From: Oopsacas minuta
Lineage: Eukaryota > Animalia > Porifera
Assembly (NCBI GenBank): GCA_024704765.1
Contig: JAKMXF010000095.1
Location: 9,864-36,219 of the forward strand
Direction: 5' to 3'
DNA: 26,356 nucleotides
Positions within the stretch are counted from its first letter, which is position 1. The number at the start of each line of letters is the position of its first letter. Made by a program: the position numbers and the translations under genes. A model generated the notes under the pieces. That model was not told the origin of the DNA and did not search any database. It saw only the letters and a list, made by a program, of their open reading frames with translations. Shown piece after piece: positions 2,772 through 25,210 of this stretch.

Positions 2772-3096
2772 AAAACTTAAGCAAATCTTAAGTTAAATTT
2801 AAGTTGGTAATCACTAAACAAATCTTAAGCAAAAACTAAGTATTTGCTTAAACTTACCAAAATATCACCAAAAAACTTAAGTCATGTCTATAGTTGACTT
2901 AACTTTGATTGTCTATTAAACTATTGCAATTTTTTGATATTAGTTATTATAGCAAGTGTAGTTTCATTTGAATATAATTATAAAATAACAGTTACAGACA
3001 TGGGGGAACGCCGTTGCCTTACTTTCCAACTTAGCAATACACAAATATAAGTTATGCAGAAAAATACATTTATCAAAAATTGTGGATCATGGTACA

Positions 3097-3823: not shown

Positions 3824-4070
3824 TTTTCGAATTTATGATATAAACACTAGAAGTGTTTTCGAAGATTTATATAATTTAGAACTATTTAACTTTTCTCAGC
3901 TGCTGGATCAATCTATAGTATCTTTCACTACCTTATAATTGTTTTAGATTTTACACAGTTATTATCAAACATTATTGGGTAATTCACCAACACTCTTCAA
4001 TATGGCTTTCGGTGTCATATTATTATCACATGTTACCATATTAGTAAACGGATTAGGAAACTATGATGTA

Positions 4071-4307
4071 CTGTATTTACTCGTACGTGAATATTTGCCA
4101 ACCCAAAAATATTTCCCAACCATCTCTTTCGGTCCATGCTCGAACGGTATTTGATAGAGAAATTTCAGGAATATGGTCATGGTGCTATGACATCTTAGAT
4201 TAATGGAATTTCCCAAATCGAGATCAAATTCCAAATTTGTAGTTGAGAGGGCGAGAAATCGTAGACTAAAAATTGAGGCCGACTACTGTTCGAGTAAATA
4301 GATACAG
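4071..4307. mobile_element. pogo/Tc1-mariner-type MITE nested in the Harbinger element
   Basis: TA|CTGTATTTACTCG at the left and CGAGTAAATA(GATA)CAG|TA at the right form imperfect TIRs with a TA duplication. Confidence 0.7.
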
Positions 4308-4510
4308 TATTACACATAGGTTATTATACTTAAGTTTTGCTTATAACTTAAGCAAATCTTAAGTATTCTATTAAGTTTTGAATATTTAGGAATACTTAAC
4401 GAAAACTTAAGTTCTACTTAAGAATTGTTGAAGTTTTACTTAACTTTAAGTTAAGCAAAACTTAAGTTGTTTAGTGGATGAAGCCCCTGTTTCATCACTG
4501 ATTAGCCTCG

Positions 4511-7393
4511 ATGTCCAACACTTGCTCTGCACCTGGATGCCGGAGTAATTATTCAGGGGAGCCATATACACGAGTATTCAGATTACCCTCAAACTCTGAA
4601 CTTAGAGAAAAATGGCTACGCGCTCTGCACAGGGAGGATATTAAAGATCTAAAAAACGTATTTGTTTGGTCTAATCACTTTCGCACTGAAGATGTCATCA
4701 CTGAAATGGATATGCCTCAACCTGATGGCTCACTACAAAATATTTCTCGGCGACCAATTCTACATAAGAACGCTATACCTTGTCTTCTTCCCAGTTGTCT
4801 CAAGTATCCTAGCTCATCATCCCCGAAGCCTGAACGTTTAGATCGTGGGAAGATCGAGAGTAAATTGTTTTCTCAAGCCTTAGAACAGAGCCTTGATCTT
4901 CATAAAGCGGAGTATAGTAAGTTCGGTGTCAAATCATTAGGAGAGCTAAAATGTAAACTCGAAGAATTTGAACTACCTTCATCTTGGGTTAAATGGTTTT
5001 GAGATGACACGTCTAGTAACTCACTAAAGCTGACAGAAAACAAACATATATATATATACCAACATATGCTTCAATTAATAACTCCTTAACACCTACAGAG
5101 TTCTATCAAAACATTCAAATTCCTCTCACAATACACAATCTCAGTGATATTCGAGAAATTGATACCATCATCAGCGAGGTTTCCGCATACACTAAGGACC
5201 CTATTGAAAGCTGTATTCGCCACGATACTTCTAACATTGAAAGTACGATTTCGAAGATAGGAACTTCGAACGATATCCTAGAGAAATATTCAGAATTGTT
5301 ACTCCAGTCAAAATTTCTACTGTGCCAGCTTGAGAATACACTAATTCTTAAAAATCGAAGACGGTGCAATATTGTTACAAAGGTGCTAGCTCTAAAATCT
5401 CATTTGAAATCTTCTACCTGCTACAGCTACTTACAGTCTTTGAATTGTTTAATATTTACCCACTCAACAACCCTACGTAGTCTTTATGGAACTATAGGCT
5501 TAGAGTGTGAGTTGTAAACATATTTGAAGGTTTCTACTACTAATTTCAATAACCAAGAAAGGAATGTTGCATTACATATGGATGAAATACATGTCAAATT
5601 AGAGTTTTCTTGCACAGGTGGGAGAATACTCGGCTCTTCAACTACACAGAACGAAGCATCCAATACAGTTCTAGCATATATGTTATCAAGTCTATGCAAA
5701 AAATGGCCTACTGTTGTACGACTCCTACCTTGCGCAAATCTTCAGCTGCTCAAATACTACCTATTTTACATAAAATAATCAAGGATATAGAAAATTGCAA
5801 TCTTCAAATTCAAGTTATTTGCACAGATAACTGCCCTCTGAATGTGAATCTGTTTAAGTTACTATCCCCTGTTTCCAATTTTGAAACCTAGGTTCCTCAC
5901 CCATTAGACACTTGTAGACCTCTGTAACTTATCTTCGACTTTGTTCACATCATCAAAACAGTAAGAAATAATTGGATAAATCAAATCGATTCTAATCACA
6001 CGTTTAGCTGTCCTTCATTCGTATCTTGCGAATATACTTTAAAGGTACCATTTCAAGACCTTCGGAATCTCTTTAAACTTGAGCAAAATTCTGTCGCTAA
6101 AACAGCCCACCGATTAACAGCCAAATCTTGCTGGCCATCTAGCCTTGAAAGACAGAATGTCAATTTAGCACTTCGCATTTTTGACGACTCAACTGCTGCA
6201 GCTTTAACACTCCATGCTTCTAAATATGGTCAAGTTTCAGGAACAGCTCAGTTCATTAACCTTATTTGTAAGGTATGGAAGATCTTCAACATTAATATAC
6301 CTAATAAAGCCATCTGTCTAAATGACGAGCTTTCTATGCCACTACAGAGTAATCACATTCGGTTTGTATTCCTTTCAGATGTTGTGAAATGGCTTGATGA
6401 ATGGAGAACTTTACCCCAAAAGCATGGAAAACTCACTGCGCAAACCTTTACCAGTTTTCGCCATTCGTGTACTGTCCTTGAAGGGATAGTCAACCATCTT
6501 ACCAAAAACTGTGGTTTTGCCTATGTTCTTAGTTCTTTCCTTCAAAACGACCCAATCGAACATCACTTTGGGATTAACCGAATGATGAGCGGTTCCCAGT
6601 ACAATATTACATTTTGCCAGGTTTTGCAAAGTGAGAGACTATTTAGGGTTTCTGCAATTCTGAAGTTGTTCTCCTCTAGTCTTCGGGTGAGAGTTCAATC
6701 TCATTAAAAGAATTTTTAAAGTCATTTTCAATCTCCGAAGAATCTAGCGATAACATTATAGTCGATTTAGACCCCTATAACAGAGTGTTCAATGAAGAGG
6801 AGACACCAATCATACTCGATATTTTTTCCTCATTCAATCTTTAGCCTTTATTGCCGGTTGTGTTCATTCCATCTTCAAAAGTGCTTTCTATTCTAAGCGA
6901 GGTATTACCCACTCTTCTGGCGTAAGAGATACTGAAGAAGCAGTATTGCTCTCAGTGTTTGTCAAGTCTTGTTCAAGAAGATACTTTCGAATTAGATATA
7001 ACTGATCCCGTCTATGGTTTAATATGTGCGATTAACAGAGGAGGCGAATTCACCGGAAGTCGAGGTCATGAACTTCGTCAACATTAAAACACCTTCCAGA
7101 TGAGGTCCTAGCTTTACCTAAGATCAGAGAAGTATCTCTTTATAGCAAGTCCATTCCGGAAGATCTTAGTTTCCTTGACATTAAATGTAATCGAGAGTAA
7201 TGAAACTGAGTTTTGGAAAAACAAGTGCACTACTTGTGACTTAATAGGATGGAATATCTTAAAGAAGATTATTATTTCAGCAACCAATTGTATCCTAGCT
7301 AACAAAGTGAAGAAGATGAATTCGTTGAAAAGGAGATTAACTGAAAGCTCGCATAACTCTCGTAAATACACCAAATTCAAATCAAATAATTAG
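4511..7393 (+). pseudogene. P-element (THAP9-like) transposase, near full length, multiple stops and frameshifts
   Basis: THAP domain MSNTCSAPGC..FRLP..KW..FVWSNHF..NAIP (the third Cys is replaced by Trp). Catalytic and other motifs: MDEIHVK (D 5581), CTDN (D 5826), IFDFVHIIKTVRNNW (D 5937), ERQNVNLALRIF (GTP-binding region) and LQNDPIEHHFG (E 6558). The C-terminal region has LAFIAG, INRGG and CTTC. No introns are needed to join the frames. Confidence 0.92.
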
Positions 7394-7853
7394 TAATTTT
7401 GATGTTGGCAGTCTCTTTGTTGCCATAGCATTTCTTATTTCTTTATATATACAATTATTGTTGTAGTGTAAATATGATAACTTTCTATCTACCATTTGGT
7501 ACGAATATTGTTAAATACAATGGAATTAATCTCAATATATCATATTCAATATATGCACTTTAAGTAATCCATGGTCCAAATGAACAGTGACGCCCTATAT
7601 TACGTAGGTAACGACTCGCCTTATACCAGAATTCGTACTAATTATATTTATTAATGAGTTTCCAATGTACATATACGTTAAATTATACATATAGGCAGTA
7701 TAGTAATATTTCTTTTGTTTTATGTCATTTAGTTGAGAAGTAGAGTAGATAATCCGTCAGTTGTTAGGACATGATGTGAATCATTTACCGAAGATTCATG
7801 GTCTGTACTTTCATGAGCAGGGAATCCTTTGAGCCTGCATTTTGCTGAATATA

Positions 7854-8398
7854 GGGTAGATCTCTAAAATCCGAGTCGATTGTGTAATCCAGCACCGCGG
7901 ACCATTAAGTTGTCATTAGTTAGAATTTTGAAGTTTGAAATTAGTAAGAAAGAAATTTTCAATAACTTGGCGATAGTCAGAAAGCTTTTCGGTAAGTTGT
8001 CTAAAGTTAGAATGATTTTAAAAGATGTTGGCATTAGTCAGAACGAGTAGCCTGACTTTGATAGAAAATTAAGAAAGAGATCGAAAACATGTAATGTAGG
8101 CATTAATGGAAATCTGTGATGTTCCAAGTACCGGTTTTCAAAAGTCTTGAAGACTTGCGAGCTCATTACTACTAGGCTCAAACACTTACTATACTTTTCG
8201 CGCGTGTAATAATTATAGAAGGATGGGAGATTAAAGATTTACAAAATTTTTGTCTAGCAATGCCAACTGTCTGACTTATAGGGGATTTCAGAGAAAAAAG
8301 TTTCAAAATACTTCTGACTAACGCCAACATACAAAATAAACATTCTCACGCCAACTTACAGAAAAAGCATCCTGACCAATCCGTCCAATAAGCTGCCC
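7854..8398. mobile_element. Foldback-like MITE with modular inverted arms
   Basis: Bounded by TA|GGGTAGAT and AGCTGCCC|TA. The left arm carries a ~20-bp motif (consensus AAGTTGGCRTTAGTCAGAA) at 7906, 7963, 7993 and 8024. The right arm carries its reverse complement at 8312-8331 and 8343-8358. Confidence 0.65.
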
Positions 8399-9750
8399 TA
8401 CTCCAATTATCCTGGAATTCAGGCGGATATCGGATAGTATTGGTGACCTACAGAAAAATTCCATTCAATATCCAAAAAAGCGTTCTATTGAACTACAATA
8501 TTTACTATGAATAATACATAGATATATAAAAGTTGTCAATTATTAGCTTATGAACTTTTACACATAGCAATTTCTAATAGGTTCACATTAACTTAACACA
8601 ATAAGTGAGATTTTGCCGGATATTGTTACCAACAGCTCTGACACTACTAGAGCTATATGTACATATGCGAGGATTATTGTCAGAAGTAAAACTCCAAAAC
8701 ACTATAATACAACCCCGCTTTGGAATCATTTTCAGTACTTTCACAAAGAATTTTATGAGCACAAAGAATACAAATAGAAGAGATTAATTCCCAAAGAGGC
8801 GAATTTGGTGACGTAGATGTCAACTTTATCTCATAAAATCTAAACTTTCCTAAATACCTGACCTAGGAGATGACCTATCTCACTACAATAGTTTGAGTTT
8901 CTTGACTGTGATCCAAGGCGGTGGATTGAGATGCTATCTACCCCCTTAAAATAGATCCGATACATATATAACATGAAAATTATTGAAAGTAGATATACGT
9001 TACTTTGAAACTAGTTTACTACCCCCTAGGAAAAGTATAATTAAACAATTACTGCCGAAGTGTTATATTCGTAGTGAAAGGAACACTAAATTTTGCCACT
9101 TCGTTTAAACTAATTCTCGCGCAAAACGAGTAGTTAGCGCCATTTTTACGCCATCAAACGGCAGTATTTGGTTAATACACTGTTCATAATGTTCATAATA
9201 AGCAAACGTACCCAAGAATATAAAATAATTGTCCTGAATTCTTAAAATGGAATCACATGGGAACCAAGTTTTAAACTTGAATCAATTCAATAAAAAAGAA
9301 TCTAAATGGCGAAGGTTCACATATCTTTTGCAGTTCTTTGCAATTAGGAATCTAAAAACTTGGGATTAATTATAGTATCACTGATTTCTGATGGATTTAC
9401 GAAATCCCAGGGTGGTATCTCTGTACAATGGTAATCGCTTATAAAGAACACACTTGAGAGTAATAAAATATCTCTTTATTACCTGTATGAATAAACAAGA
9501 GTATATGAGGACGATTTCCAGAGGATTATTTTCATTTCAGATTTGTTCCTACAATAGTGGTTCTTATAAGCTATACCCATTGTACCCACATTGTACAAAC
9601 AAACGTTAGTGAGATAATTAGGACTACATCTCTCAGCTAAAAACATTTAATGAAAGCAAGGCCCTAAGCCAGAATTTATTCGCATTTCATGTTCGCTTTC
9701 TAGACCCTGAAATATCTTGGATCAGCAAATGTGCAGGTAAAAGTAAGTGT

Positions 9751-9770
9751 GAACCCTGGCTACGCTACTG
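9751..9770 (-). mobile_element. Orphan hAT-type terminus in the tetraspanin intron
   Basis: GAACCCTGGCTACGCTACTG reads CAGTAGCGTAGCCAGGG on the other strand. No partner end or TSD was found. Confidence 0.45.
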
Positions 9771-9924
9771 TTAACGGACGATAATCGATACATTAGTTTT
9801 TGTTGAATTGGTGACTTTTCAGGATTCTTGGGTACTGATTTTCCAACTAATTGATAATCTTTGGCGGACAATAATCACCGCTTAGGCTAATACACACACA
9901 CCACGTGAATATATATATATATAC

Positions 9925-10550
9925 CTGGAAATACAACCAATTGTCTCAATATTTGATAATCTTGTCTGGTCTAAGGGATTTCGCACAGAATAGCCACATT
10001 GTGAGTTTATCTGCTGAGTTGGAATACAACATGAGCTTGGAACACCGCATGCTTCAATTCCTAAGGCGGAGCAATTAAAGTAACGATTAATATTCCAATC
10101 CTGATAGGAATTGCTGCCACAGCAGGAGAGGTAATTTTGTACTAAATCCACAGCTGCACGAAGATCGGAATTTTCTCTATATTCTTGGATAAAAAACAAT
10201 ATGGCAGTATTCGCTTGTTCTGTAACTAAGGACCGTGCAGCAAAAATAACAATGACAAAAACGATCTGGATAAGCAGAAATAGTCCAACAGCAACTATAT
10301 ATATAATCAAAAATATCCGTATTTCTCTCAAAGAACCAATTGCACCAAAAAAACCAAAAATAAGCAGAATAACACCAAAAATAATTATCGCAATGGCTGG
10401 ATCAGAAATAGCTGAGGAAATTTGTGATAATCTTTGAGTTTCTATGCGGGCGTATATCCCAATTGCAAAAAGAAGAAGTCCAATGCAGAGAATAAACACA
10501 TTGAAAGCAAGTGAAATGAACTTGAGTAAATACAATAACCAGGGCATAAT
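9925..10550 (-). CDS. Tetraspanin, TspanC8 subgroup (TSPAN5/14/15/17/33-like), main exon TM1-TM3 plus EC2
   Basis: Stop-free frame with three TM segments, GFFGAIGSLRE, and an EC2 with CCG, DWxxNxYFNCS, EACGVPSSCC, QCG and GC (8 Cys). The exon ends in phase 2 at GCIS-AG|GTATAT (donor 9924-9923). The ORF-track tail YIYIYSRGVCVLA is intron read-through. Confidence 0.93.
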
Positions 10551-10607
10551 CTAAGAATTAAATCAAGATATGAATAAGATATTAGTCTATCCTAGTACTA
10601 TAGAGAC

Positions 10608-10700
10608 CTGAGACTTCTTCCAGCAGTCAGATCTCTCTGAAATTTTCACAGAGAATGTGGATCGTTGAGTGAAACCAAAAATGTGATAATAATTGAACAT
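10608..10700 (-). CDS. Probable first coding exon of the tetraspanin (N-terminal cytoplasmic tail)
   Basis: ATG at 10700 gives MFNYYHIFGFTQRSTFSVKISERSDCWKKSQ (31 codons). A 57-bp GT-AG intron (10551-10607, acceptor TTAATTCTTAG) joins it in frame to IMPWLLYLLKF. The donor GTCTCT is weak. Confidence 0.55.
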
Positions 10701-10939
10701 GCACTAACCGAGCATAATTATTTTAACACAACTAAATGTAAAAATACATCACTTGGCTATACGGAGAATATTTGAAAACCCATACAATAAACTACAAGTT
10801 TGTAATTTCATGTAACTTTTCGACATGATTGAAAAGGGACTGTATTCGGGAAATTAGCACAGGATTAGACTATAAATAAGATGTAAATCGATGATATAAA
10901 TGAATATTAAAAAATTGAAAATTTTTCAATATGTCCAAA

Positions 10940-11000
10940 AATTATAAATGCCCCAAAATTACAAATGCGAATAAATTACAAATGTCCATTAATTACAAAG
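10940..11000. repeat. 17-bp-period tandem repeat x4 (core AATTACAAATG)
   Basis: Cores start at 10940, 10957, 10974 and 10991. The array abuts the truncated P-element fragment. Confidence 0.8.
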
Positions 11001-11005
11001 CAATT

Positions 11006-11250
11006 AACGTGTATTTCATCCACTTGAACTATAATATTTCTCTCCATGAACTGAAGGAAGAAGTAGCTTGGGTGAGGTAGGTTGAGAAATCGTTTTCATT
11101 GCCAAACGAAGAACACAATGTATTTAACGTCTGAACATGCGGTAGAGAAAGACACTCTAAACACTCGGGATATACATAACATGCTGGAGAAATGAGAAGA
11201 GTCTTAATTGATATGACTTGAGTAATTATATTGTACTGTTGCGTGAGATT
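11006..11250 (-). pseudogene. Second, divergent P-element transposase fragment (region up to the first catalytic Asp)
   Basis: NLTQQYNIITQVISIKTLLISPACYVYPECLECLSLPHVQTLNTLCSSFGNENDFSTYLTQATSSFS / MERNIIVQVDEIHV aligns by eye, colinearly, with RCNIVTKVLALKSHLKSSTCYSYLQSLNCLIFTHSTTLRSLYGTIGLECEL*TYLKVSTTNFNNQERNVALHMDEIHV of the 4511-7393 copy. Not in the ORF track. Confidence 0.85.
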
Positions 11251-11571
11251 TTAGCCCATTAGTATTATTGGACCAGGGATAGTTTTCACCGTGAGATTAT
11301 AACTCATCTATATTAATGCATCAGTAGCGTACTGAAACTCATGAAATATTCTAAAACAAAACGAAGTCAATTTTAAAATTTTTATGTAGAGGGTGTCTCA
11401 AAAGTATTTTCCTCTTATGAATACCACTACAATATAGAATTTCTTAGATAGATTCATCTAATTATTTGCCTATATATTCACCATTAAGTTTTATACATGA
11501 ATTAATTCGACTTGGCATCCCATCAACTAAATTCTCAAGTATCGACGGGCTAATCCCATTCCATATATTTN

Positions 11572-11697
11572 ATGTTATTGTATGGAAATTACTAGATTGC
11601 GGCTACGAATATAGACTACACAATATATAGGAGCGGGAAAGAGTATACAATTTATGACAATATATTTGTGTGGTCGAATACTTTTGTCCCTTGACTG
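11572..11697. mobile_element. Tc1-like element, right terminus following an assembly N
   Basis: Ends ...GTGGTCGAATACTTTTGTCCCTTGACTG|TA. Bases 11603-11697 are the exact reverse complement of 26262-26356. Confidence 0.85.
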
Positions 11698-12008
11698 TAT
11701 ATCAATAGTTGTCTCCGAGACATCAAGTCGGGTCCTAGCATTAAGTGAGGATTTATGGGGAAATTTACCCCAAATTATGCGAGCATTTGAGATCTAGACT
11801 TATAATATTACATAAGTAAAGATTACTTGGTTCCAAGTAACCTACATTAGAGATAAGACAGGGCATTTTACATTTGAAATGGCCCAGGGGTGGGAAATTA
11901 GAAAAATCCTAGTATCAAATCTTCACCTTTGACCCATATATGCCAAGACTAGGGGAGGTGGGGACAAGCATTTATAGGTGCAATAGCTGGAAAGTACTAA
12001 CAACACCG

Positions 12009-12414
12009 CAGAGCATTAAGCGCTCCTGCGCTGAAAAGGTAGATAACTCCCACCTCCGCTCCTTATTAAGAAAGGGAGCGCACTCCGGCTCGCGCTCCAA
12101 TTGCTCTCCATTACATTCTTACATAATTATATGAGATTTGAATTTAAGTAATCAGGATTGAATTTAACCATTATACCAACTGGAAATTGCTAAATGTGCA
12201 ACGCCCATTTCAATAAACTGTGAATTATACGAAAGTGTTCCAGCATCAACATTTTATGGCAAGAATATTGTATTTGATGCAGATTAACGATGAAATTTGT
12301 AAATTGTTTGCAATTAAATACGAGCGCGCTCCTTCAAAAATAGAGCGCCTCTCCACCTTCCGCTACTGAATCATGGATGGAACGCGTACCAAGTCTCGCT
12401 CCTTTAATGCTCTG
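12009..12414. mobile_element. Complete hAT-type MITE (406 bp)
   Basis: TIRs CAGAGCATTAA / TTAATGCTCTG. The 8-bp TSD is CAACACCG (12001-12008) versus CAACACAG (12415-12422), a 7/8 match. Both subterminal regions contain many CGCTCC/GAGCG motifs. Confidence 0.88.
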
Positions 12415-12808
12415 CAACACAGCGCATCTCTGAAGCATAATGTTACGACATACGAGCGATGAACTATGAAAGGGACAAGTAACAACGATAGATTTTGATA
12501 ACAGTAAAAGTGAAGATAAGTAATCCAAATTAGAATATATATGTGAGTCCTTATAGCTTTCTAACTTCTGCTGCCGAATTGAGAGATACACAACAACTAA
12601 ATACATCAACTCGTAACACTACAAATCAAGACAATACAAGGATCATATAATCACATAATTAGATGATTCTATGAATTTTAATAAATGTCTTCGTATTTAT
12701 TTAACTGAATATATATTCACCTATAAATAAACTACATTTAGATTCACAAATCATTTCGTATTACATTACTTTTGATATTACCAGTAATCTGTATGCGACA
12801 ATATAATG

Positions 12809-14329
12809 CACAGTGTGGCAAAATGGCCATAATGGGGAAATAGGTAAATGCATCTGTATTATCACCACAATTATACTTACATATACTAAATCGACACTGT
12901 AGATTTCAAAAATACCAATGATTTTTTAGTAGCAGGACTATAAACTTAGTTATGACGTAATTACTGACATTTTCTAATTTTGAACACTTGTGGTTCATTA
13001 GTGAGGATATTATGAAAGTTGATAATACATGCATGTCATGGTCTCTATTCTGCTATTTGATAACGTACAATTTAAAGACCCTTAATTATGTATGACTTTT
13101 GGATATACTTATTATCATAAATCATCTGTTAGTATACTATTATATAATACCTCTTGGAGGCTATTTGCAAAGTCTCTTTTCTTCTTTGCGTGAATCAAAC
13201 GATTCTGTACTAAGATGGAGTCACTACAACATAACAACCTGACTAAAATATCACTAACATTATCTGTGAAAGAAGTTTTTCTCGCAAGATTCTCCCGATA
13301 CCGCCTTACAAATTTATTGCAGGATTCTAAACATTCCTCAGAGAGATTCTGTAATCCCTTACCATCATTGTAAGTACCTATTAACTGAAACGAATGGGCA
13401 AGTAACTTGTGCAAAGATTGAGGATGCTTGCCCATGGGTACTCAACTAGCAAAATTCGGACGTTCTTTGCACAATTCTTGCATTATGTCACAGTTAATCG
13501 AGGCACCACTGTTGAGGAGTCTTAACAAAACAGATAGATTTGTCTGGATCTTCTCTAATGATATTTTATCTGAAGGATTAATGGAGGAAATGGCCCACGT
13601 CTAAAAGTCTCTTATTTGAAAAACAGTCTCGCGCAATGTTACCAGTGGTTGAAGTGCCGACCTGGCTTGAAGGGATAGCGACACTGAAGTTACATCTTTC
13701 CTGGAGTATAGCTCGAGCCCGTTTCATGTAAGAATTTACTTTCGAGTTTGATGGCGCCCATACCTTGTGTCCTGCATCAAGATGGTATATCAACAGCATG
13801 AACCACCTGAATATACAAAGGTAAGGCATGCAAAGGAGACGCAGCTATAATATCGCTGTTAGAAGTTGTTTGATGCGTAATACTAACACGTTGATTTGAT
13901 GGAGTTTCAAGTAATCTTCTTCATCAACCTCTTCAAAAAGTTCCGGAGCGTCGCTAATTAATCTGTTAATAGGAAACCAGAATGGGCCCATTCTAAACTT
14001 TTAATTTGGCTATCCGTCGCAGTACACAGATGACAAGAAGGCACACCAGCTCCATCCAGCAATCCTGCCATCTTGGTATCAAAAAGGGAACGGATTATCT
14101 CGACCTGTGCATGGCCTCCAATAAGAGATAACCCATCCTGTATGATATGGTCTGTTTGAGGATTGACTATTGTATTCATGATAAGCTTACATTAGAATAT
14201 TCTTCTTTCAAAGCTATCAGTGCTACTGGCCTAAAGCAGAACGGAGAGTTGGGTGAGCTGTTATAGAACACGTCATTTCCAAGTGTGCCTGTAATTGATA
14301 TTGCTTTGAATCGGAACTAAATGAAAGTA
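12809..14329 (-). mobile_element. Transib DNA transposon (RAG1-core-like transposase), 3' two-thirds with TIR
   Basis: The terminus starts CACAGTG-TGGCAAAATGGCC at 12809, about 300 bp beyond the transposase stop. The element is cut by the N at 14330. Confidence 0.82.
13115..14329 (-). pseudogene. Transib/RAG1-core-like transposase, frameshifted
   Basis: Reconstructed order: FRFKAISIT..NSSPNSPFCFRPVALIALKE; SLFDTKMAGLL..SCHLC (D codon 14078-14080, RAG1 D708 equivalent, plus CxxC); SPLHA(Y)LCIFRWFMLLIYH; GTSTTGNIARDCF; LLVEYPWASIPQSLHKLLAH; LSEECLESCNKFVRRYRENLARKTS..N..D...RL...SD (E codon 13325-13327, RAG1 E962 equivalent). At least six frameshifts. Confidence 0.88.
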
Positions 14330-14330
14330 N

Positions 14331-14533
14331 TTGCATAAATATGTATTTACTTTAGTTGCGTAGGCTGAAGATAATATAAAACATCTGTGAACTTAGTTCG
14401 ATCATTACTTTTGTCATTATAATCGCCTTTCTGATATATTTTCAGACTATTCAGTAGGTATATTCTCGCAATGTGCCATATGTCGCATGTGTCATTAATG
14501 GTATGGTGTTCCGATACTTTTGGCCAGGGAGTG
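14331..14533. mobile_element. Tc1-like element, right terminus following an assembly N (second Tc1 family)
   Basis: Ends ATGGTGTTCCGATACTTTTGGCCAGGGAGTG|TA, the reverse complement of the classic Tc1 TIR CACTCCCTGGCCAAAAGTATCGGAACACC. Confidence 0.8.
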
Positions 14534-15877
14534 TATGTGAATATTTGTGTTGGACATAATATATACCCAAACAAGATAATGCGACCCCTACCAGTCGTTC
14601 GTTACACACAGACCCCTCGTAAAAGAGGCTGGCTGAACCAATGTATTATTTCCTAGGTTGCAACCGAATAGTTCAATATTTGGTTCAACCGGAAATACTA
14701 TGCCGAAGCGATGATATTCTGTTGCAGTTGACCTCAGTGGTCCAATTCATGCATAGTTGTATTAATTTCTTTGAAAAAGTTGTTTTCAAATCAATAATCT
14801 TCAGTAGAAACAAGCCTAAATATGCAAATATTTCGGCCGTTCAGTGATACATATAAATTTCAGTTTCATTCCCATAACAAAATGCGAGTTGTAAAGAATT
14901 GAATATTTGCATACGAAAGAATCTTCAACGTAAATATTTTTGATGATGAGATTGAATATGCAAAAATGCTTTACAGGGCAAATTTTGAAACAAACAAGTA
15001 TTTGATCTACACAAGATTCTTTCTCAGGTGAGAAACAAACAAGTGCAAGGTAAGTAATGTTTTGGAAATTATTGCAGCGACCTCCCGCGGCAATCGTGGC
15101 GTTTCTGAAGCTCCTGAATCAACAAAGGGAGCAGTGCCTCAAAATACTTAATATAATAGGCTCTAATAAAAAATATACTGAGTAAAACTGGGAGTAACCA
15201 AATAATCCTTTAGTGTATGGTTTTCCCATTCCTAAGTTGATTAATTGCACTCAATTGATCGTTAAATGACATGAAATTAAAATGAAATTAACCTAAAAAT
15301 GACCTAAAAATTGACTTCTTAAATTTTGAGACTTTGCCAGATCTGAACGTATAATTTATATATATATGACCAGAACTGACTAGGTAGAACCTTTTGACAA
15401 GCCTGTAAGGGGGACCATTATTTTCTTAATAATAAACGTGACCTCAAATCTCAAATGATGATTTCTACAATATGAATAAAAGTAAATGCACGGGAGGGGA
15501 AATAACCAAAATGACCACAAAGACGAATTAAAAAGACTTTATATTCTTGGAGTAACTTTAGTAGAGGAAATAGGAGAAGATTACGAAAATAAATGACCTT
15601 TTATTTAATTTTAGCTACTTCATTCTGTAAGTACAGGATTTCATGGAAGAAAAATCGAACATCTTAAAGACCTCATGAAATTGTTCAGAATGAGAGTATT
15701 CACGACATCTAATGATACATAAAATACGAGTAGTACTACATATAGATAGTTATCAATAAATGAACAAAGATAATAATCCATTCAATAGTAGGCGAAATAT
15801 TAACAACATTATGAAAGATGGTAAATATGTACCACAATTTAGAGATATTTAATAATATATTACGTAATATAGGACAA

Positions 15878-16031
15878 CTAAGAAATTTTGTTCGAGCTTT
15901 TAATCGAAGGTTTTCTCTTTATTTCAATAATAAGTCCGATAGCAAGAAGAATGGCGAGGATTTGAATAAATAATAAACCAACTCCAATTCCACCAACTGA
16001 ATATAAATTCGTTTCAACCAAATTCTCAAAT
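15878..16031 (-). CDS. Tetraspanin terminal exon (end of EC2, TM4, C-terminal tail)
   Basis: Strong acceptor CTTTATCCTTTTTTAG (AG 16033-16032), phase 2. Reads (R)FENLVETNLYSVGGIGVGLLFIQILAILLAIGLIIEIKRKPSIKSSNKIS*, with the conserved TM4 Gln and no internal stop. Not in the ORF track. Confidence 0.88.
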
Positions 16032-16434
16032 CTAAAAAAGGATAAAGTAATCCTTGGACATTAGAAAAATTAACATAAAAGCACATGATATTTCCATACT
16101 CAGAGTAAATATAAGAATGGGGTCAGGTCCGGGATTAGCCTGTATGCCAACTAAGGCATGCACCCTCATCAGGATATTTGTACACTCTGGAATGATCGTG
16201 TTATTCAATTGTCTACGTGTGGGACTCAAATTACTAAAGATATTTAGGGCTAGTTTCACACGCATCTTCCCCTAAATATCATGTTATATCAACCAAATCT
16301 CAGGATATACTTCGTATATATCTCGAATTAATCAACAGACTGATAGTTATATGGCGATAAACGTAAGTTTAAGTATGAAAAGTAAGCTGACAGTACGAAG
16401 GTACCTATTATCATACTAATTATTCCTGTCCTTC

Positions 16435-16522
16435 TCGCCTAGACCACACTGGGGGCTTATATCGCTCCCAAGACATCCAAATGTTGGTTATCCTCCATCA
16501 AAAATTCGTAGCTACGCTACTG
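16435..16522. mobile_element. hAT-type MITE right arm
   Basis: Degenerate CCxAGACCxCxCTGGGGGCTTAxAxCGCTCCCxAGAC-type internal motif followed by the terminus GTAGCTACGCTACTG (reverse complement CAGTAGCGTAGCTAC). The left end was not found. Confidence 0.45.
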
Positions 16523-16730
16523 GCCCTTAACAGAGATGGATACCCACGGTTTCGGGACCTGCAAACTTGGATATTCTCAAGCTGGGTCAAATAGACAGTT
16601 CGGAACGTGGACAATATGGTATATGGACAGTCGGTTTGTGACAAATCGGCACAGTGCTAATTTAGGTGTAAATTGGCTTTATATTTATTTTCATAGATCA
16701 TCAATCGATTAACTAGTTGAAATCAGTAAA

Positions 16731-16814
16731 CAGTGGAAACCACCTAATAGCAAAATCCGCCCATTAACCAGAGAAATCTTGCAAATTACGATTGCTAATA
16801 GGAGGTTTCCACTT
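16731..16814. mobile_element. Small pogo/Tigger-like MITE (84 bp)
   Basis: CAGTGGAAACCACCTAATAGCAA pairs with TTGCTAATAGGAGGTTTCCACTT (20/23 inverted match). A second, more decayed Tigger-like left end (AGAGTGGAACCTGCATAAACCGACACC) follows at about 16824. Confidence 0.7.
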
Positions 16815-17236
16815 TGTGCTGGTAGAGTGGAACCTGCATAAACCGACACCTGTATCAAGGTTTGGCACCGATATATCGTGTAATGAAAAATATCCATATC
16901 AGGATCTCCAAAAATACAGCGGTTTAGCAAAATTGATCAAGTTTTATTGTTGTATTTTTAGCATTAGTAAAATAGAAGAATGAATTTCTACTAAAGAATC
17001 CTAATACATGTATATTGAAGTATTAGAATTTGCACTTTATACTGAATTATGTTAATTGAGTTTCTAATCTATAACCAAATAACATGATAACAGTTCATAA
17101 TACAGTTTATGCTGAAAGTTGTTTCGTTTCGTGTCGTGGACTCTCAATGGTTTTAAAATGTAGATTTCGATACGAGTGCGAAGTAAGCTGAATATTTGAC
17201 CAACAGAACTTCAACCATAAATTTGACTAACTTACT

Positions 17237-18530
17237 TAGGGGTTTCAAAAGGTTTAATTGTTTAATATCCTGACACGACAACAAATTACTAATCAAATTT
17301 CTACATAAAACATCAATGCATAGTTGTAGCCTTTCAACCCACTTCGAAAATGTTATTTTATACTCGTCTCTGTCCACTGAATTGAGGTAGTGGTAAATCC
17401 CGTTTCCTAGCTCAAGTCGGGTTTTTGCCGTCTTCCAGATGTTATTTCAGCCCATGAAATAGCCAGAAATCACAAGGTGATAGATCTGGGGAATACGGAG
17501 GAAGTTCCATCATCTCAAACCCGACATCCTCAATAACTTCCCTAACGTATTATGAAACATGAGGTCTGGCACTATCGTGGAGTGATTTGATTCCTCGTGT
17601 TCCCGTAGCGGACGTCAGTTATACAGACTTTCTCGACTTCTCTCAAGATTTTTCTGCTTAAAATTCTCCATTGAGTCGTTCTCCTTTAGGCACAGGCATT
17701 TGAGCCACTGACAATAAGCACCAAAAAGTATGCTGTAGGTAACTTTATCGTCTCGGAAGTCCGACGTGCCTTTCCGGGGGATAAGACCTTTTGGGAGCCA
17801 TGATTTCCTTTGTTCCTGACGCAGAGGTTCAGAAAATTTAATCCAAGTCCGTCACCAGGAACGATTTCATATAACCTTCAAGAATCACAATCTCTATATT
17901 CTTTAAGCAATATTTTCCGGCATGAAACCCTCTTCTCCTTTTGGCCTTTTATGAGGATTTTTGGCATCCATCGCGCTAAAATCTTACGATATTCGAGATA
18001 ATGGTGTAGAATTGTATGAACACTTCCCGATGAGATGTCAAGGATTAGGGCAATCTCTCCAACGCTCAAATGGGGATCAATATCCAATAGTTCCAGAATT
18101 TGAGAGGGAATTTCAGGGGCTGTTAGCGGAAATAGATCTTCCGGTCCGAGGGTCATTTTCAATGTTGCCCCTACCAACCTATAATTTACGTACCCATTCC
18201 TTTACAGTGGGATACGCTAGAGCTTCCACATGATAAACGGTGACGAGATCCTTATGTATCTGTAGTGGTTTGTCGGCGAGTACGGTACGAATCTTTATGT
18301 TAGCTCGTTGTTCGGTATTGCTTGATGTGTTCTGAAGCCATGAAAAAGTTGACCCTCGGAAATAGGTAAAATTGAAAGTAGGATCAAGATATATAATAGC
18401 TAGAGTGAATTGCTCAACTCCATTAAATAGGCAATTGATAGGACTATTAGGATAACAATGCATTTCATGTAATCGAGTAGAGTTTGGCTGCTATAAACAA
18501 AGGATGGAAACTCTTTAAATGCCCAAAGTA
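17237..18530 (-). mobile_element. mariner (DD34D) element, full length (~1.3 kb), decayed transposase
   Basis: EQRANIKIRTVL..IHKDL..VY..AL.YPTVKEW (HTH); RWMPKIL (WVPHEL variant); IVPGD (D1 region); LHDSARPH (D2); PPYSPDLSPCDFWLF (D3); FSKWVERLQLCID. Degenerate TIRs at 17237-17255 (TAGGGGTTTCAAAAGGTTT) and about 18508-18530. Confidence 0.9.
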
Positions 18531-19288
18531 CAATTTTCCGAATGTAAATATTTTGACCATTCGAAAGAAGAGAGCGGCGTTTCTGAGAATGATTTTATTT
18601 TTCTAATGGAAATTTGTGTATCAAACTAGCAGTAGTTCACATAATAATTTAGCATACTTAAACAAACTTGTTTCCTGAAATCATGGCCATGGATTTTTGC
18701 CGTATGGATGTTTATGTATTCAAAATATTATATTAAAATACTCAAAACTTTTTTGAGATATTTAGGTTTGAAAACTGTCTTGTTTGAGCAGAGTCTTTAT
18801 TGGATTGGTACTAAGGGCAGAAATTTAATGAAAGATTCTAATCCATTCAACTATAGTAACTCACACAGATTACTGCAATATTACTGTTTAATCTCAGTTG
18901 GCTCGTTATGAATTAATCAATGAATTATAGAATTTACAAAGTAATTTCAGTTAAATCATAGCATTTAGTTCCATATATCCCAAAAATAGATCAATAAATT
19001 CATTGTTTGAAATGTCGAGTAGAAATGGATAATTCAGAATCATTTGCTAAATTTCAAATAATTAATCAACTTATAAAAGATACATATTCACATGATTATT
19101 TCCCTATTTGAAATACAAAACAATGTTACTGAAGAGTAAACATCTTAAAATAGTTCTTCCGAATGTACCAATATTATCTTATATTTCATCCATTCATAAA
19201 CAAACTCCTATATTTTTATCACTTTCAACAAAAAATCTTTCACAACTTTAAAAGTCTTATTGACTAAGGTTTGTCTATTTTTAATAAA

Positions 19289-19386
19289 CAGTATTTCTCG
19301 AATAGTACGCTGGGACGATTATACATTTCGAGGATCCTTCATGGGGGCGATTATTCGAAGGGCTACTTAAAATTCGAGGATAAAGG
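19289..19386. mobile_element. Decayed pogo-type MITE
   Basis: CAGTATTTCTCGAATA at the left and AATTCGAGGATAAAGG|TA at the right, with internal GGGGGCGATTATTCGA. The terminal style matches 4071-4307. Confidence 0.45.
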
Positions 19387-19722
19387 TATCTAAATTCTGC
19401 CTTATATTTCAAAGATTGTATTTTGATCTTCAAATTTTAGAATTTTACTTTCGTTTCGACCTCTCCGTCAATGGAACCACATAGTTTCCTTACTTCAAGT
19501 GGAATCAATATTTCAAAATATAACTTCATTTCTTTCTATATAAATTATTTCTGTCTCATCGGAATGCGTGCTAGATGTGTTGTAATCGATTGCTATAAAA
19601 AAAGTTAGATTTATCTTGCACGTTTTCTGGTGAGCGGCGCATATGGCATTTTGATGTTCCTCTTTTAGTTCCACGAGAGCTTCAGCTGTTACTTTTGTAA
19701 ATCAAATACACTTTCAATTTAT

Positions 19723-20354
19723 ACAAAGAGGTTGTGAGTTCATTTCAGATGGCCCTAGCGTTAGCGATTCTATTTGGGGAATTATTTGTATAAAAACTAC
19801 ATGGCCGCAATAATCCAGCTCAACGAAAATCTATTTATTTCAAATGGAAAAATAATTCCCGAAATATCCGTGTATTATTCGAGCGAATAATCGATCGATC
19901 TGTCTCACCTCAGCCATCTATAGATTTCATACCGTGTATCTCGCTTTCTCCATGTCCACCAACTCTACAAATTACAACAAAATCATTGATTGTGAGTTAT
20001 AGCCTCGACTCTTTCTCAATAGAAGATTTTCCATCTCTTCAAACTGCCACAATTTATCGATATATTGTCCATTGCCTGGAATATGCATCTTCTTTAATGA
20101 TAATCAATAGGGAATATGTTTGGTATTCAATTTAACTGGATTTGTTAGAAGATAGGCTAATGGTAATTTCGTCTTCAGCTGCATCTGACCCATTACATTA
20201 CTATGATTTGAGAGATGAGCAATTCAGTATCGACCTCTGCGGGTGCAATTATAGTGGTAGTTTAGTCGAATATTATAATTATAACCTTAATCAGGCTCAG
20301 TTATGGATTGATGGTCGTAACTTCACCGTTATCGCAGTCCAAATTCTTACATAA
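19723..20354 (+). pseudogene. Unidentified decayed coding segment (~210 codons)
   Basis: GCEFISDGPSVSDSIWGIICIKTTWPQ*SSSTKIYLFQME / NNSRNIRVLFERII...YVWYSI*LDLLEDRLMV...WIDGRNFTVIAVQILT*. Only two stops and one 1-nt frameshift (about 19850) occur over about 630 AT-rich bases. No family recognised. Confidence 0.4.
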
Positions 20355-20489
20355 TTTTTTGAGAATTGTGAGTATTCCATTTGTATAGTGTAGTTCATTC
20401 GTAAACAAATTCCCACAAAGTCAGTATGAACATCAAGTCATTGAGCAGACAACCTTATTGCTAATGTGGATAGTTCTACATAAAATTGA

Positions 20490-21350
20490 TTGTAAATCGA
20501 CAATTTTGTTTGAGAATAAGTACTTACTTCTGACCAAAGATCAGATGAGAATATATATTCCTTGGGTAGCCATCTTGCGAGACCAGGTTTCATGTGTGGA
20601 TATAGAGGCATTTAAAGCTGCCTATACCTAAATGCATTAAGGCTAGAATATGCGGAATAGAAATTTTCCCCTGATTGTCCCAAACCCCTGGCCCAGAAAA
20701 TACTCATCTTCTGTTGATGAGGATTTTGAAGATGAAGATCCTATCAAGTGCAATAATATTATTACAAATACAGTTGATGACCAAATAGTCCCGTTATCTG
20801 ATAAATCTGAAGAATTTCCTATGACACCAGAGTTGAAAGTCAATGGCGAATCTCATCTTGAGATGGTGTATGGGATAGTATTCATATTATAGATTTACAA
20901 GGTAGAGAAAGGTTAAATATAGAATGGACAGCTGTGTTCAGCAATAAAATATCTGAAATATAACCAGAATGTGTTTGTAAGATAACAATTATTGGTATAA
21001 AAAGTCTTCCAGTCGAAAAAATGAATTCGCCCCTGCTTTCGAGCAGCTGATGAATGCAAGTTGTAAAATTGTTACAAATTTGAGTTTTGTATTGACTTGT
21101 AATTACGAATACAATCAAATACAATACTTAGTAAGTGGTTCACTCTCCTCGCAACATTCTGATGGAGAGACTGTACATGCATGTCATATATCTGTTAGTT
21201 TGATACGAAGCAATTGATCAAATCCATGTTATTCTCTGCAAGTTTTAGATTATCTGCTGACATTGTTATGCCAATTCTAGATCTTTGGAATGGAATTATA
21301 CTGTCTAAGAGCAATGAAACCTGTGTAAGGCAAGTAATGCAAGTGCAGAA
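20490..21350 (+). pseudogene. Unidentified decayed coding segment
   Basis: Long low-stop stretches in shifting frames (FENKYLLLTKDQMRIYIPWVAILRDQ..; RNFPLIVPNPWPRKYSSSVDEDFEDEDP..; IDLQGRERLNIEWTAVF..; AFEQLMNASCKIVTNLSFVL..). No family recognised. Confidence 0.3.
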
Positions 21351-21734
21351 GATTAGTTTAGAATAGTCAAACATACAATTTTAGAAACAAATGTAAACCT
21401 AAGAGCTGACGATGTTATAAGTACAACGTATCAATATGTGAATGACAGAATTGATGCAATAAATTTTGTATTTCATCCTTTGGCTATCAACATATTTAAA
21501 AGTAGGAAAATGCAAGTAGAAATACAAAATGAGGAAGGATCCAAAGAAAATGGTTGTCTCAGAAGTATATACCAACAGAGTTACAGCAATCCTAACCTAA
21601 TTAGAGCAAATAAAGTTTTGAAGCAATAAATATAAATAAAACGGGAGGAAAAATTTCTGATTTTGTATCACACAAAAGGAATATTGACAAAGATTCTGTA
21701 AGAAACACGAGTCCAGGTGTTGTCCTCTCAGTTG

Positions 21735-24700
21735 ATAATAATAATAATACATCATTTAAGGACGCTTTCTACAAATTGTCTCGCGTTTAGAGTTCAGATT
21801 AAGTGTGTCACACCAAAAGTACAAAAACAGTACAAGAAAAATTATGTGAAAGTTACTTTTTGTAAGTCTTAGCGAATAAATGGGTTTCTTAGTATTTTTT
21901 GAAGGTGTCAATGGAAGTAGAGTTTCTGACATGAACCGGAAGAGAATTCCAATGCCATGGGGCTGTTATGGAAAAGGACTGATCCCCATAGTCCCTTAAT
22001 CTTGATCTAGACTGCTTAAGTTGATTAGAATTAGATGATCTGAGATTATAAGGATTTCACACAGGTGAATTATGTCACATAAATATCCTCGACAATAGCC
22101 ATAATAACTTTATAGGTAACCAAGAGTATCTTAAATTCAATCCTTGGATTAATAGGTAACTAATGAAGGCTCTCTAACGCTGATGTAATATGTTCAAATT
22201 TCTTAGTACTGAAACTAAGCTGGCCGCAGAGTTTTGACTTGTAGTCTATTTAATATTTTATTAGGTAGACCAAAAGATAAGGAATTAGAGTAGTCTGCTA
22301 TAAACACATGAACCATTTTCTGCTTTGAGTTTTTTGTCAAAATATTCAGCAATGCATCCAATCCTACTTAGAGATAAAGCAGTTGAACTACAAACCGTGC
22401 TCATATGCTGCTTCATTGATAGAGTATTCTAACCCAAATAACACTCAAGATGCGTAAACTATTTACAGGCTGCAAAATTGTAGAGCCAAACTCAAAACAA
22501 TTAGATGTAGGTGTAGGCTTAAATCTGAAAAAAATATAAGAAATTAGACTTAGTTGAATTACCAATTAACTTATTAGCAGTGAACCAACTACACACATCA
22601 TCTAAACAATCCTCAAGAGAGTGTAAAATTTTTTCACGGTTTGATGGCTGTATAGAAATGTAATCTGAGTATCATCAGTATAAATGATTCCAGTTGATCT
22701 GTACGCTCTAATAATGTCTTCTACTGGAGAGATGTATAGATTAAAAAGTAATGGACCAAGTGCAGATCCTTAAGGACCCCCAAACTTCGTAATGATAGAA
22801 CCTGAGCATGTTCCGTTGATACCAACCATCAGTTCCCTACTAGTCAGGTAAGACTAAACCCAATTCTGGACTTTTTCAGACAATCTCAATCTTAACTTTA
22901 AGTGTTCAATAAGAATAGCGCGATCAACCGTATCAAAAGCTTTGGATTGGTCCAGGCGAACTAATGCAACTTCCTCACCGGGATCAAGTGAACAACTATA
23001 TCAAAGCAGTTTCGGGGGAATCAAATTTGCGATAAGCAAATTGCAACCTAGGGTACAGAAAATTATCAGTTAAATATATGTCTAATTGATCATAAACAAC
23101 TCTTTCAATAATTTTTATAAGGATGGTAAAGTGGCAATCGGTCTATAATTAGATAACTCATTTACTTCAAGGGAAGAATGTTTAATCAAAGTTGTAATCG
23201 ATGATTGTTTTAGGAGTTTCGGTAAACAGCTGTCTGTAGAGAGGTATTTACAATATGGAGAAGAGGAATTAACAGTGTCAAGACATGATTTAAGGACAGA
23301 AGTAGGCATCGGATCAGAACCGCATGAATTGATTGACGCCTTTTTGATCAATTGATATAAGTCATTCGATATTACTTCCATAAATGCAGTGAAATAATAA
23401 CTACAATTGACAATATCAGTATGTACTACATCATTGCTTGTCCTCCCCAAACTATCACTTCTGAGTGCACCAATTTTGGAAACAAAAAAGTCAGAGAATA
23501 AATCAGCAAGTGATACGTTAGACTGAGCTTCTGGCAGAATATGTGCTTTATCAGCCGTTAAGCTGCGAATCAATCGAAAAAGCTTCTTATTATTGTCACA
23601 GCTCTGTGGCAATCATAAGAAGCTTTTGTTTGTATAAATTCCCAATAGTTCTTTTTATAAACACGACATTTGGTTCTGAATAACACTAAATTTTCACAGT
23701 TCGCCCTTTATATAGTTTCTTTCAATTCACAGCAGTTCACGCTTAATATCTCAAAGATCACTTGTATACCAATGAGAAAAAAGTCGGCTTGTCACAAATT
23801 TATGAGTTAGTAGGGCGTGAATATCCAGAACAGCACGTAGGTTAGATTTATAGTCATTGACTAAAATAGTCAACATGATCATCAATAGAAGATTCAGAAC
23901 AATAAAACTTTAGCTTCAAATCATCTATAAATTCATCAATTTTGATTGACTTGATCTTCCTCGTGGATATTTTAATCTTAGGCAAACGAGGAGAAACAAA
24001 GTTTAGAAATAACATAAGAGTGATCCATAAATGTGTCAGAGAAGGTTTGTGTTGAAACAATCTAATCAGAGTCCATCTACCTTGTAGTAACTAAATCCAG
24101 GGTATGACCACACCGATGAGTTGGACCATAAACATGTTGTAAGTTAAACTTGGTCAATATTTCATTGAAGAGTATAGTTTGTGGATTAGATGGAACATCT
24201 ACCGGAATATTTAAATCACTATCAAAAATTAGCTTATTGTTGGAAGAAAATAGCCATTCAATTAAATCAGAGAACTCGGAAATAAATTGAGCTAATGTCA
24301 ACCATTTTTACAGAAGGTGGCGCACGGTAAATTGAGATAAGTCTGAAAGGCACTTTGCGCCGTTGACATAGTCAAATCAAAGTGCTCAAATGAAGTATAT
24401 TTTGATATTTATTCATAATTAATCTCAATCTAGGGTTAGGAATGACTGCAATAGCACACCACGAGCAGGACATGAAATGGTTATGTTGTGAAGAGGTAGA
24501 AGGTCACTGAAGATAGAAAGTGAATGATCATTATCATGCTTCAGACAAGTTTCACAGATAACTAAGACATCTAACTGATTCGAGGTAACCATTTCAGCCA
24601 CAGACGTTATCTTGTTCTTAACTGGGCATGCGTTCCATATACCAAATTTACTGTCATGCTGCCGATGAGGACGAGATACAAATGATAAATTAAAGAAATT

Positions 24701-25050: not shown

Positions 25051-25210
25051 TATCTGTAGTTTGTTTATGAAGACTTGTGTAAATTTTAGTCAGACTGGTA
25101 AGTTTGATATTTGTAACACGTTACTTGATGTCAGGGTAAGTCTAAGAATAAATAATATCAATAGTCAAATGAACTGGCCATTGATCTATTATATACCAAG
25201 TGCTACATAG

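Follow-up and report, generated by a model that had tools for sequence, protein, structure and literature searches.

The two parts of a tetraspanin gene that lie in the wrong order in the Oopsacas minuta assembly probably belong to one ordinary two-exon gene of the TspanC8 type, whose exons look misordered through scaffolding. In the window (the whole stretch of DNA analysed, 26,356 nt), the exon encoding TM4 sits 5.3 kb upstream of the exon encoding TM1 to EC2 on the minus strand. The initial annotation had called this order wrong, a description that holds for the assembly but probably not for the genome. Biologically the locus is of little consequence: the gene would be an ordinary tetraspanin of the TspanC8 type whose large intron is filled with transposons. 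For the assembly the consequences are wider: short, transposon-rich O. minuta scaffolds appear to carry contigs in reversed order with their strands kept, yielding false "scrambled genes" (the tetraspanin here, PARP1 on scaffold C17) and false split transposons. Any O. minuta gene model, synteny analysis or claim of gene loss in which a single-N join is involved should be re-checked with the PacBio reads.

Two intact exons in an odd order

The coding parts of the locus, together with a tract next to the start codon, are as follows.

9925-10547, minus strand: exon 1 of the tetraspanin gene, with its ATG at 10547, encoding TM1, EC1, TM2, TM3 and an EC2 with eight cysteines
10551-10560, minus strand: splice-acceptor-like tract taattcttag, 3 nt 5′ of the exon 1 ATG; a putative spliced-leader acceptor
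15878-16031, minus strand: terminal exon for the last part of EC2, TM4 and the cytoplasmic tail, with acceptor, frame, stop and ATTAAA

Exon 1 (10547-9927) comprises 207 codons free of stops despite a sequence of 35% GC, and ends in ...TIGCIS plus AG (bases 9926-9925) in phase 2, followed by a GT donor at 9924-9923. Compared with the Pfam Tetraspanin profile (PF00335) it scored 114.1 bits (cut-off 32.1, E = 9.7e-33), the match covering profile positions 1-173 of 225. TM4 is thus absent from this exon, in line with the earlier description of a main exon that stops at AG/GT in phase 2 before TM4. By a Kyte-Doolittle scan, exon 1 contains three hydrophobic segments and the terminal exon a single one. 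The EC2 cysteines number eight (C142, C143, C159, C167, C173, C174, C184 and C205), all of them retained, and the CCG motif of the large extracellular loop corresponds to C142-C143-G144, which is invariant in 8/8 orthologue sequences. In three-way comparisons with two orthologue lineages, exon 1 carried 7-13 lineage-specific changes, as against 14-24 in the others. With no excess of changes and its eight cysteines intact, exon 1 shows no decay at the level of sequence.

The terminal exon begins at 16031 behind the acceptor ttttttag (AG at 16033-16032), ends with the stop TAG at 15880-15878 and is followed by ATTAAA at 15853-15848. Searched on its own, it gave a weak match to positions 190-223 of the Pfam Tetraspanin profile (E = 0.075). 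A profile built from 20 TspanC8 homologues matched it in the TM4 region (columns 229-267 of 288, probability 95%, E = 3.4e-8), in line with the earlier reading of an intact phase-2 terminal exon. This profile match begins collinearly right after the end point of exon 1, and the splice phases of the exon 1 donor and the terminal exon acceptor agree. The four TM segments (three plus one) lie in one polypeptide only if both exons are spliced together; the encoded product of the joined exons would be a four-pass membrane protein, a TspanC8-type tetraspanin.

When ten full-length homologues were compared with the whole scaffold by tblastn, six of them matched the upstream TM4 exon collinearly among the matches listed (P0007, P0013-P0016 and, weakly, P0006), and for five of those six it was the second-best match (E = 0.012-0.42). 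Among the same matches there was no consistent TM4-like candidate downstream of exon 1, and upstream of 16034 the search for a TM1-EC2 exon was negative, so both absences claimed from the initial reading of the window stood. Weak recurrent matches at C95 ~6100-6200 and at window 3373-3426 were rejected as tetraspanin relics, being Cys-rich stretches. The initial annotation had also proposed counting copies of both exons in the whole assembly: exon 1 and the terminal exon are each single-copy across the 61.46-Mb genome. The absence of a second copy of either weakens its first option, tandem paralogues.

All sequence searches were run separately for each exon. A protein search with exon 1 returned no spliced or transcript-derived product, and a word search with the TM4 exon for spliced products gave no match. 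The close matches to exon 1 (P0001-P0005, P0121-P0123) are all genomic ORFs that end at the donor or read through it; P0122 (265 aa), considered as a full-length spliced orthologue, was rejected as intron read-through. Seven protein entries from ENA assemblies are orthologues, 78-82% identical and apparently from two related lineages, and the phase-2 intron just before TM4 is conserved in all glass-sponge orthologue entries. Scans of metagenome and genome contig collections for orthologous loci turned up no relative.

Scaffold joins and the left neighbour of contig c3

The O. minuta assembly (365 scaffolds, ~61 Mb) was produced with SPAdes (k = 21-99), then SSPACE, Pilon and GapFiller (PMC10280926). 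The scaffold at hand, C95, is 36 kb long and consists of at least four small contigs, among them c2 (2468-11570), c3 (11572-14329) and c4 (14331-26356). Its joins and the elements around them are listed below.

2467: join c1/c2, a single N; c1 ends 185-197 bp into a ~2.1-kb transposon (2270-2466)
2468-2771: left end of c2, the final 304 bp of another transposon, which is at least 1.25 kb long
2772-4487 and 4487-7613: two full-length multi-copy transposons, downstream of exon 1
11571: join c2/c3, a single N; c2 ends 189 bp into a ~1350-bp transposon (11382-11570)
From 11572: left end of c3, beginning with the inner edge of an inverted repeat that belongs to a MITE
14330: join c3/c4, a single N; c3 breaks off within a 3115-bp Transib-like transposon (12809-14329), after reaching its base 1534
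14331-14536: left end of c4, part of an unrelated ~256-bp MITE whose left inverted repeat is missing

Young transposons with copies 95-100% identical are abundant in the region; no repeats were listed in 7614-9924. Each of the six contig ends flanking the three Ns breaks off within a multi-copy element, and the missing remainders of the interrupted elements are absent from the scaffold, so that a near-zero gap is impossible at each join. Judged by these truncations, each of the single Ns (2467, 11571 and 14330) marks a scaffold join where two contigs with unrelated repeats at their ends were put together; two of these joins, 11571 and 14330, fall between the two tetraspanin exons. A reading of the Ns as ambiguous bases was rejected: the Transib-like element halts at its N, and other copies continue for 1.6 kb. 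In SSPACE/GapFiller output, a single N denotes a non-positive gap estimate for which no overlap was found. A literature search on this rule yielded nothing useful.

The order of c3 and c4 can be read from two elements, an old DNA transposon (TE2) and a MITE.

11572-11702, plus strand: left end of c3, formed by the 131-bp terminal inverted repeat from the right side of a ~918-bp Tc1/mariner-like MITE
26259-26356, plus strand: right end of c4, and with it of the scaffold, formed by the outermost 98 bp of that MITE's left inverted repeat
25704-26259, plus strand: segment of TE2, which in other copies runs directly into the homologue of 11700-12797
11700-12797, plus strand: next segment of the same TE2 copy, on c3
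17172-19033, plus strand: long inverted repeat on the left side of TE2, in two pieces (17172-17235 and 18537-19033) around a 1.3-kb insertion

In the TE2 copies on C222, C54 and C199, the homologue of 26259 runs straight into that of 11700; the junction leaves 2 bp unaligned in C222, the same in C199, and 38 bp in C54. C53 carries a fourth copy, which passes from 26169 to 11731 with ~100 bp unaligned. In the window, a single ~918-bp MITE has its left inverted repeat at 26259 and its right one at 11700, and the junctions show TA dinucleotides. Positions 26259-26356 are the exact reverse complement of 11603-11700; this 98-bp inverted match between c3 and the scaffold end was considered as a hairpin or large inverted duplication and rejected, since a terminal repeat belonging to the multi-copy MITE accounts for it. 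Four unbroken TE2 copies and both MITE ends together imply that the right end of c4, the MITE and the left end of c3 are physically adjacent. On the evidence of these elements, c4 lies left of c3, opposite to the scaffold order and with its strand kept. The outer end of the TE2 left long inverted repeat is 1.1 kb from the TM4 acceptor. The right long inverted repeat, expected after c3, occurs neither on the scaffold nor anywhere else in the assembly, which contradicts the c3/c4 join once again.

A proposed mirrored chain of contigs and its rivals

We propose that C95 is an SSPACE chain of SPAdes contigs, each broken at young multi-copy transposons, and that the chain was probably laid down mirrored with strands preserved. 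The true order would then be c4 (with the TM4 exon), c3, c2 (with exon 1), and the minus strand would lead from exon 1 through an intron of 24 kb or more, filled with nested transposons, to the TM4 exon. The cause may lie in mate-pair geometry, that is, in library orientation or paired-end contamination. As c4 occupies the left side of c3, a real link between c2 and c3 leaves only the right side of c3 for c2. If c2 keeps its strand, as c4 does relative to c3, the exons return to their canonical order. Exon 1 comes upstream of TM4 in the corrected order only if c2 indeed lies right of c3 with its strand kept, a position and orientation that we infer. No split element links the right end of c3 to the left end of c2, where elements abut end to end, and threading c1 and c2 through split transposons failed for the same reason.

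One gene is favoured because the phases match, the TM4 exon is collinear with the profile and both exons are single-copy. Counting against a two-exon gene is the size of the implied intron, which at 24 kb or more is ~70 times the genome mean of 341 bp (PMC10280926). PARP1, on the minus strand of the short scaffold C17, has its catalytic domain (20495-18632) placed 5′ of its N-terminal zinc fingers (7080-2815), an arrangement that, judged from the domain order, shows the same signature of reversed blocks.

The initial annotation had offered four options for the exon order. The half of one of them that invoked mis-ordered contigs is the one supported, given that the Ns are joins and that c4 belongs on the other side of c3; scrambled-order or trans-splicing and a circular or permuted locus received no positive support. 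The odd order has the scaffold as its sole evidence, and the sequence contradicts the joins there.

An unlikely alternative to the mirrored chain is that only c3 is misplaced. The true order would then be c2, c4, c3 and the TM4 exon would really lie upstream, the two exons stemming from tandem paralogues or from a partial tandem duplication, with the partner of each exon hidden in an unassembled transposon-rich gap or collapsed in the assembly. The adjacency of c4 to c3 is, after all, the sole one proven by sequence, the position of c2 being deduced; the right end of c2 and the left end of c4 both stop in repeats and could abut, and tandem tetraspanin arrays exist in the genome. Yet the 61-Mb assembly holds no second exon 1 or TM4 exon, a link between c2 and c3 across the 12-kb c4 would require unusually long inserts, and two orphan half-genes that match in phase and sequence are less economical than one gene.

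It is quite improbable that the order is real and that a recent transposon-mediated rearrangement or circular permutation split the gene, leaving the exons as young remnants of a dead gene. The wealth of young, near-identical transposon copies in the region would suit such an event. However, the joins that produce the order are contradicted by sequence, exon 1 has neither an excess of changes nor a stop in its 207 codons at 35% GC, and the TM4 exon retains acceptor, frame, stop and ATTAAA. That the order is real and the gene functional, a full-length mRNA arising by trans-splicing or scrambled-order splicing between transcripts, is very improbable: matching donor and acceptor phases and intact exons would allow it, but positive evidence is lacking, it requires the contradicted scaffold order, and the same pattern in PARP1 on C17 points to a technical cause.

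Comparison with known tetraspanins and scaffolding errors

The best named matches of the tetraspanin are tetraspanin-33-like, -5, -17 and -10 (31-43% identity). TspanC8 proteins are tetraspanins with eight EC2 cysteines (Tspan5, 10, 14, 15, 17 and 33) and are partners of the protease ADAM10 (Dornier et al. 2012, PMC3483123). The O. minuta gene resembles them in its Pfam Tetraspanin domain, in its three TM segments with a fourth in the terminal exon, and in an EC2 with CCG and eight cysteines. In contrast to the named members, it belongs to a glass-sponge lineage, and the binding of ADAM10 and control of its trafficking, which mark the subfamily in other animals, would be putative in the sponge protein.

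Within the same genome, a paralogue at C111:615664-616389 shares 41% identity over TM1-EC2, an identical cysteine pattern and an identical short linker from the final GC to TM4. Unlike the gene in the window it is intronless, a single 288-codon exon with TM4 contiguous. Used as a tblastn query against the scaffold, this paralogue did not match the TM4 exon among the matches listed, and BLASTP of its TM4 against the window TM4 exon gave no significant match. Tandem tetraspanin arrays are present in the genome on C298 and C210.

As an assembly, the locus resembles mis-orders of the SSPACE mate-pair type in its short, repeat-bounded contigs, in single-N joins with no possible overlap, and in one adjacency proven reversed with orientation kept.

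Two tetraspanin exons

The exon order reported by the initial annotation, with a terminal exon for the fourth transmembrane segment (TM4) lying upstream of the TM1-EC2 exon (exon 1), was borne out in the assembly by the positions, phase and uniqueness of both exons:

10551-10560, minus: splice-acceptor-like tract (ttcttag), ending 3 nt 5′ of the exon 1 ATG
10547-9927, minus: exon 1 open frame by translation, 207 codons from the ATG
16031-15878, minus: TM4 exon, with a ttttttag acceptor upstream and its TAG at 15880-15878

Exon 1 ends in two extra bases, AG, followed by a GT donor at 9924-9923, and its peptide matched Pfam Tetraspanin with 114 bits over profile positions 1-173 of 225, indicating that this phase-2 exon lacks TM4, as had been claimed. 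Three segments of the peptide are hydrophobic, and its large loop contains eight cysteines and a CCG motif. The tract preceding the ATG would fit a spliced-leader signature. Complementary in phase to the exon 1 donor, the TM4 exon codes for FENLVETNLYSVGG, then for a hydrophobic stretch and lastly for a basic tail, with ATTAAA 25 nt past its TAG. Profile comparison aligned its 50-residue peptide with the TM4 region (columns 229-267 of 288; probability 95%, E 3.4e-8) of a profile built from 20 TspanC8-type homologues.

Ten full-length homologues were compared with the whole scaffold by tblastn. Among the matches listed, the TM4 exon followed directly and collinearly on the exon 1 match for at least six of the ten and was the second-best match for at least five of these homologues, which fits the proposed pairing; no other consistent TM4 candidate, downstream of exon 1 or elsewhere, was among them, in agreement with the original reading. 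With a paralogue from scaffold C111 as the query against the whole scaffold, the TM4 exon was not retrieved among the matches listed. The suggested copy-number search of the assembly found each exon to be single in the genome. Each exon was compared on its own. The best named relatives (tetraspanin-33-like, -5, -17 and -10; 31-43% identity), together with the eight cysteines, place the predicted gene with the TspanC8 group of ADAM10 partners (PMC3483123).

Contig ends and scaffold joins

The Oopsacas minuta genome (365 scaffolds, ~61 Mb, 36% GC) was assembled with hybrid SPAdes (k ≤ 99), scaffolded with SSPACE and further processed with Pilon and GapFiller (PMC10280926); the assembly searched here comprises 365 contigs and 61,460,524 bases. 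The window forms the final 26,356 bp of C95, a scaffold of 36,219 bp. To judge from the flanking sequence, the Ns of the window are scaffold joins, separating contigs c1 (to 2466), c2 (2468-11570, carrying exon 1), c3 (11572-14329) and c4 (14331-26356, carrying the TM4 exon). Their ends comprise:

2270-2466, c1 right: 185-197 bp of a ~2.1-kb element
2468-2771, c2 left: final 304 bp of a different element of at least 1.25 kb
11382-11570, c2 right: initial 189 bp of a ~1350-bp element
11572-11702, c3 left: right 131-bp inverted repeat of a ~918-bp MITE
12809-14329, c3 right: initial 1534 bp of a 3115-bp Transib-like element
14331-14536, c4 left: ~256-bp MITE without its left repeat
26259-26356, c4 right: outer 98 bp of the left inverted repeat of a ~918-bp MITE

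All contig ends examined thus stop within a multi-copy transposon whose remainder is missing from the scaffold, so that a near-zero gap is impossible at every join. SSPACE places a single N where the gap estimate is non-positive and an overlap is absent. Other Transib-like copies stay in step beyond the N, at which the window departs from them. This family, which starts CACAGTG and has at least 40 copies, appears very young given the 99.7-99.9% mutual identity of four sampled full copies (L019:685-3800, L020, L021 and L022), and is perhaps still active; the window copy is older (95.8% identity).

A transposon shared by c4 and c3, and a proposed contig order

TE2, an old DNA transposon family of 4.7-7 kb with terminal inverted repeats of 0.5-0.8 kb, is represented in the window at 17172-26259 and 11700-12797, with several younger elements nested inside. 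In copies elsewhere, the homologue of 25704-26259 is directly joined to that of 11700-12797, with 2, 38 and 2 bp unaligned on scaffolds C222, C54 and C199, respectively; in a fourth copy, on C53, the homologue of 26169 is followed by that of 11731 after ~100 unaligned bp. In the window, the first point falls at the right end of c4 and the second at the left end of c3, where opposite terminal repeats of one MITE occur with the flanks ...TTATGCA-TA-CAGTC... and ...GACTG-TA-TATCAAT...; this site has the sequence ...TTATGCACCTATCAAT... in intact TE2 copies. The two ends represent a single Tc1/mariner-like insertion within one TE2 copy. Continuity of TE2 and the paired MITE repeats imply that, with both contigs in plus orientation, c4 lies physically ahead of c3, and hence that the scaffold order of these contigs, as read from sequence, is opposite to the physical one. 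The c3|c4 join is a true adjacency in mirrored order with strand kept, not a random false link.

The 98-bp inverted identity was also considered as a hairpin, which was rejected, as it is the terminal repeat of the ~918-bp MITE. The terminal inverted repeats of this element (TACAGTCAAGGGACAAAAG...) measure 131 bp and are flanked by TA; copies lie at loci L032-L036 (95-100% identity). The left terminal repeat of TE2 begins 1.1 kb from the TM4 acceptor, at 17172. Its right counterpart, expected beyond c3, occurs neither on the scaffold nor elsewhere in the assembly, the best remaining matches there having 74-82% identity.

As the left side of c3 is taken by c4, we infer that c2 lies to the right of c3, provided that the c2-c3 link reflects real proximity; this is the step from the transposon to the gene, and no split element linking c3 right to c2 left was found. 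The true order would then be c4, c3, c2, with strand preserved as in the c4/c3 pair, and the minus strand would read exon 1, intron, TM4 exon. The putative intron would comprise:

9924 down to 2468, c2 part: 7,457 bp
missing transposon sequence between c3 and c2: at least ~3,000 bp
c3: 2,758 bp
missing MITE interior: ~689 bp
26356 down to 16034, c4 part: 10,323 bp
total: at least ~24,000 bp

Such a length is exceptional against the genome mean of 341 bp (PMC10280926). TE2 makes up most of it, and only ~3.4 kb (7614-9924 and 16034-17171) gave no repeat in searches that scored the best candidates.

We therefore regard a mirrored scaffold with an ordinary collinear gene as the probable explanation. 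Among the options first proposed (tandem paralogues, a collapsed duplication or mis-ordered contigs, scrambled or trans-splicing, a circular or permuted locus), the TE2 copy and the Ns as joins support mis-ordered contigs alone. That only c3 is misplaced, beside a genuine tandem or partial duplication, is unlikely; it shares the reversed c4/c3 pair and parts from the preferred reading at the placement of c2. A real, recent rearrangement leaving a dead gene is rated lower still: it would take the exon order at face value, but the sequence of exon 1 is unlike that of a pseudogene in decay. In three-way comparisons it carries 7-13 lineage-specific changes, as against 14-24 in either orthologue lineage. 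These orthologues are seven ORF entries from ENA assemblies (P0001-P0005, P0121 and P0123; 78-82% identity to exon 1), which appear to form two related lineages and all end at, or read through, one and the same GCI(A/S)R junction, showing that the intron is conserved. Exon 1 differs from all seven at four otherwise invariant residues, F40L, E94Q (in TM3), L103A and P162L (in the NCSAPG motif), despite which it changes slowest among the three lineages. Scrambled or trans-splicing, which would likewise accept the assembled order, is very improbable.

Comparison with PARP1 and tetraspanin paralogues

On the short scaffold C17, the PARP1 catalytic domain (20495-18632) lies 5′ of the N-terminal zinc fingers (7080-2815), all on the minus strand and with normal exon order within each block. 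This is probably likewise a scaffolding artefact, and reversed blocks with strand kept in a conserved PARP1-type gene argue for a technical cause. The closest tetraspanin paralogue occurs as a tandem pair (C298:274278-277302; 39-59% identity) with stops within the matches, and these would be multi-exon genes or else pseudogenes. A single open frame spans the EC2 end and TM4 of the second member, indicating no intron at the position of the window gene's intron. The C111 paralogue is intronless with a contiguous TM4.
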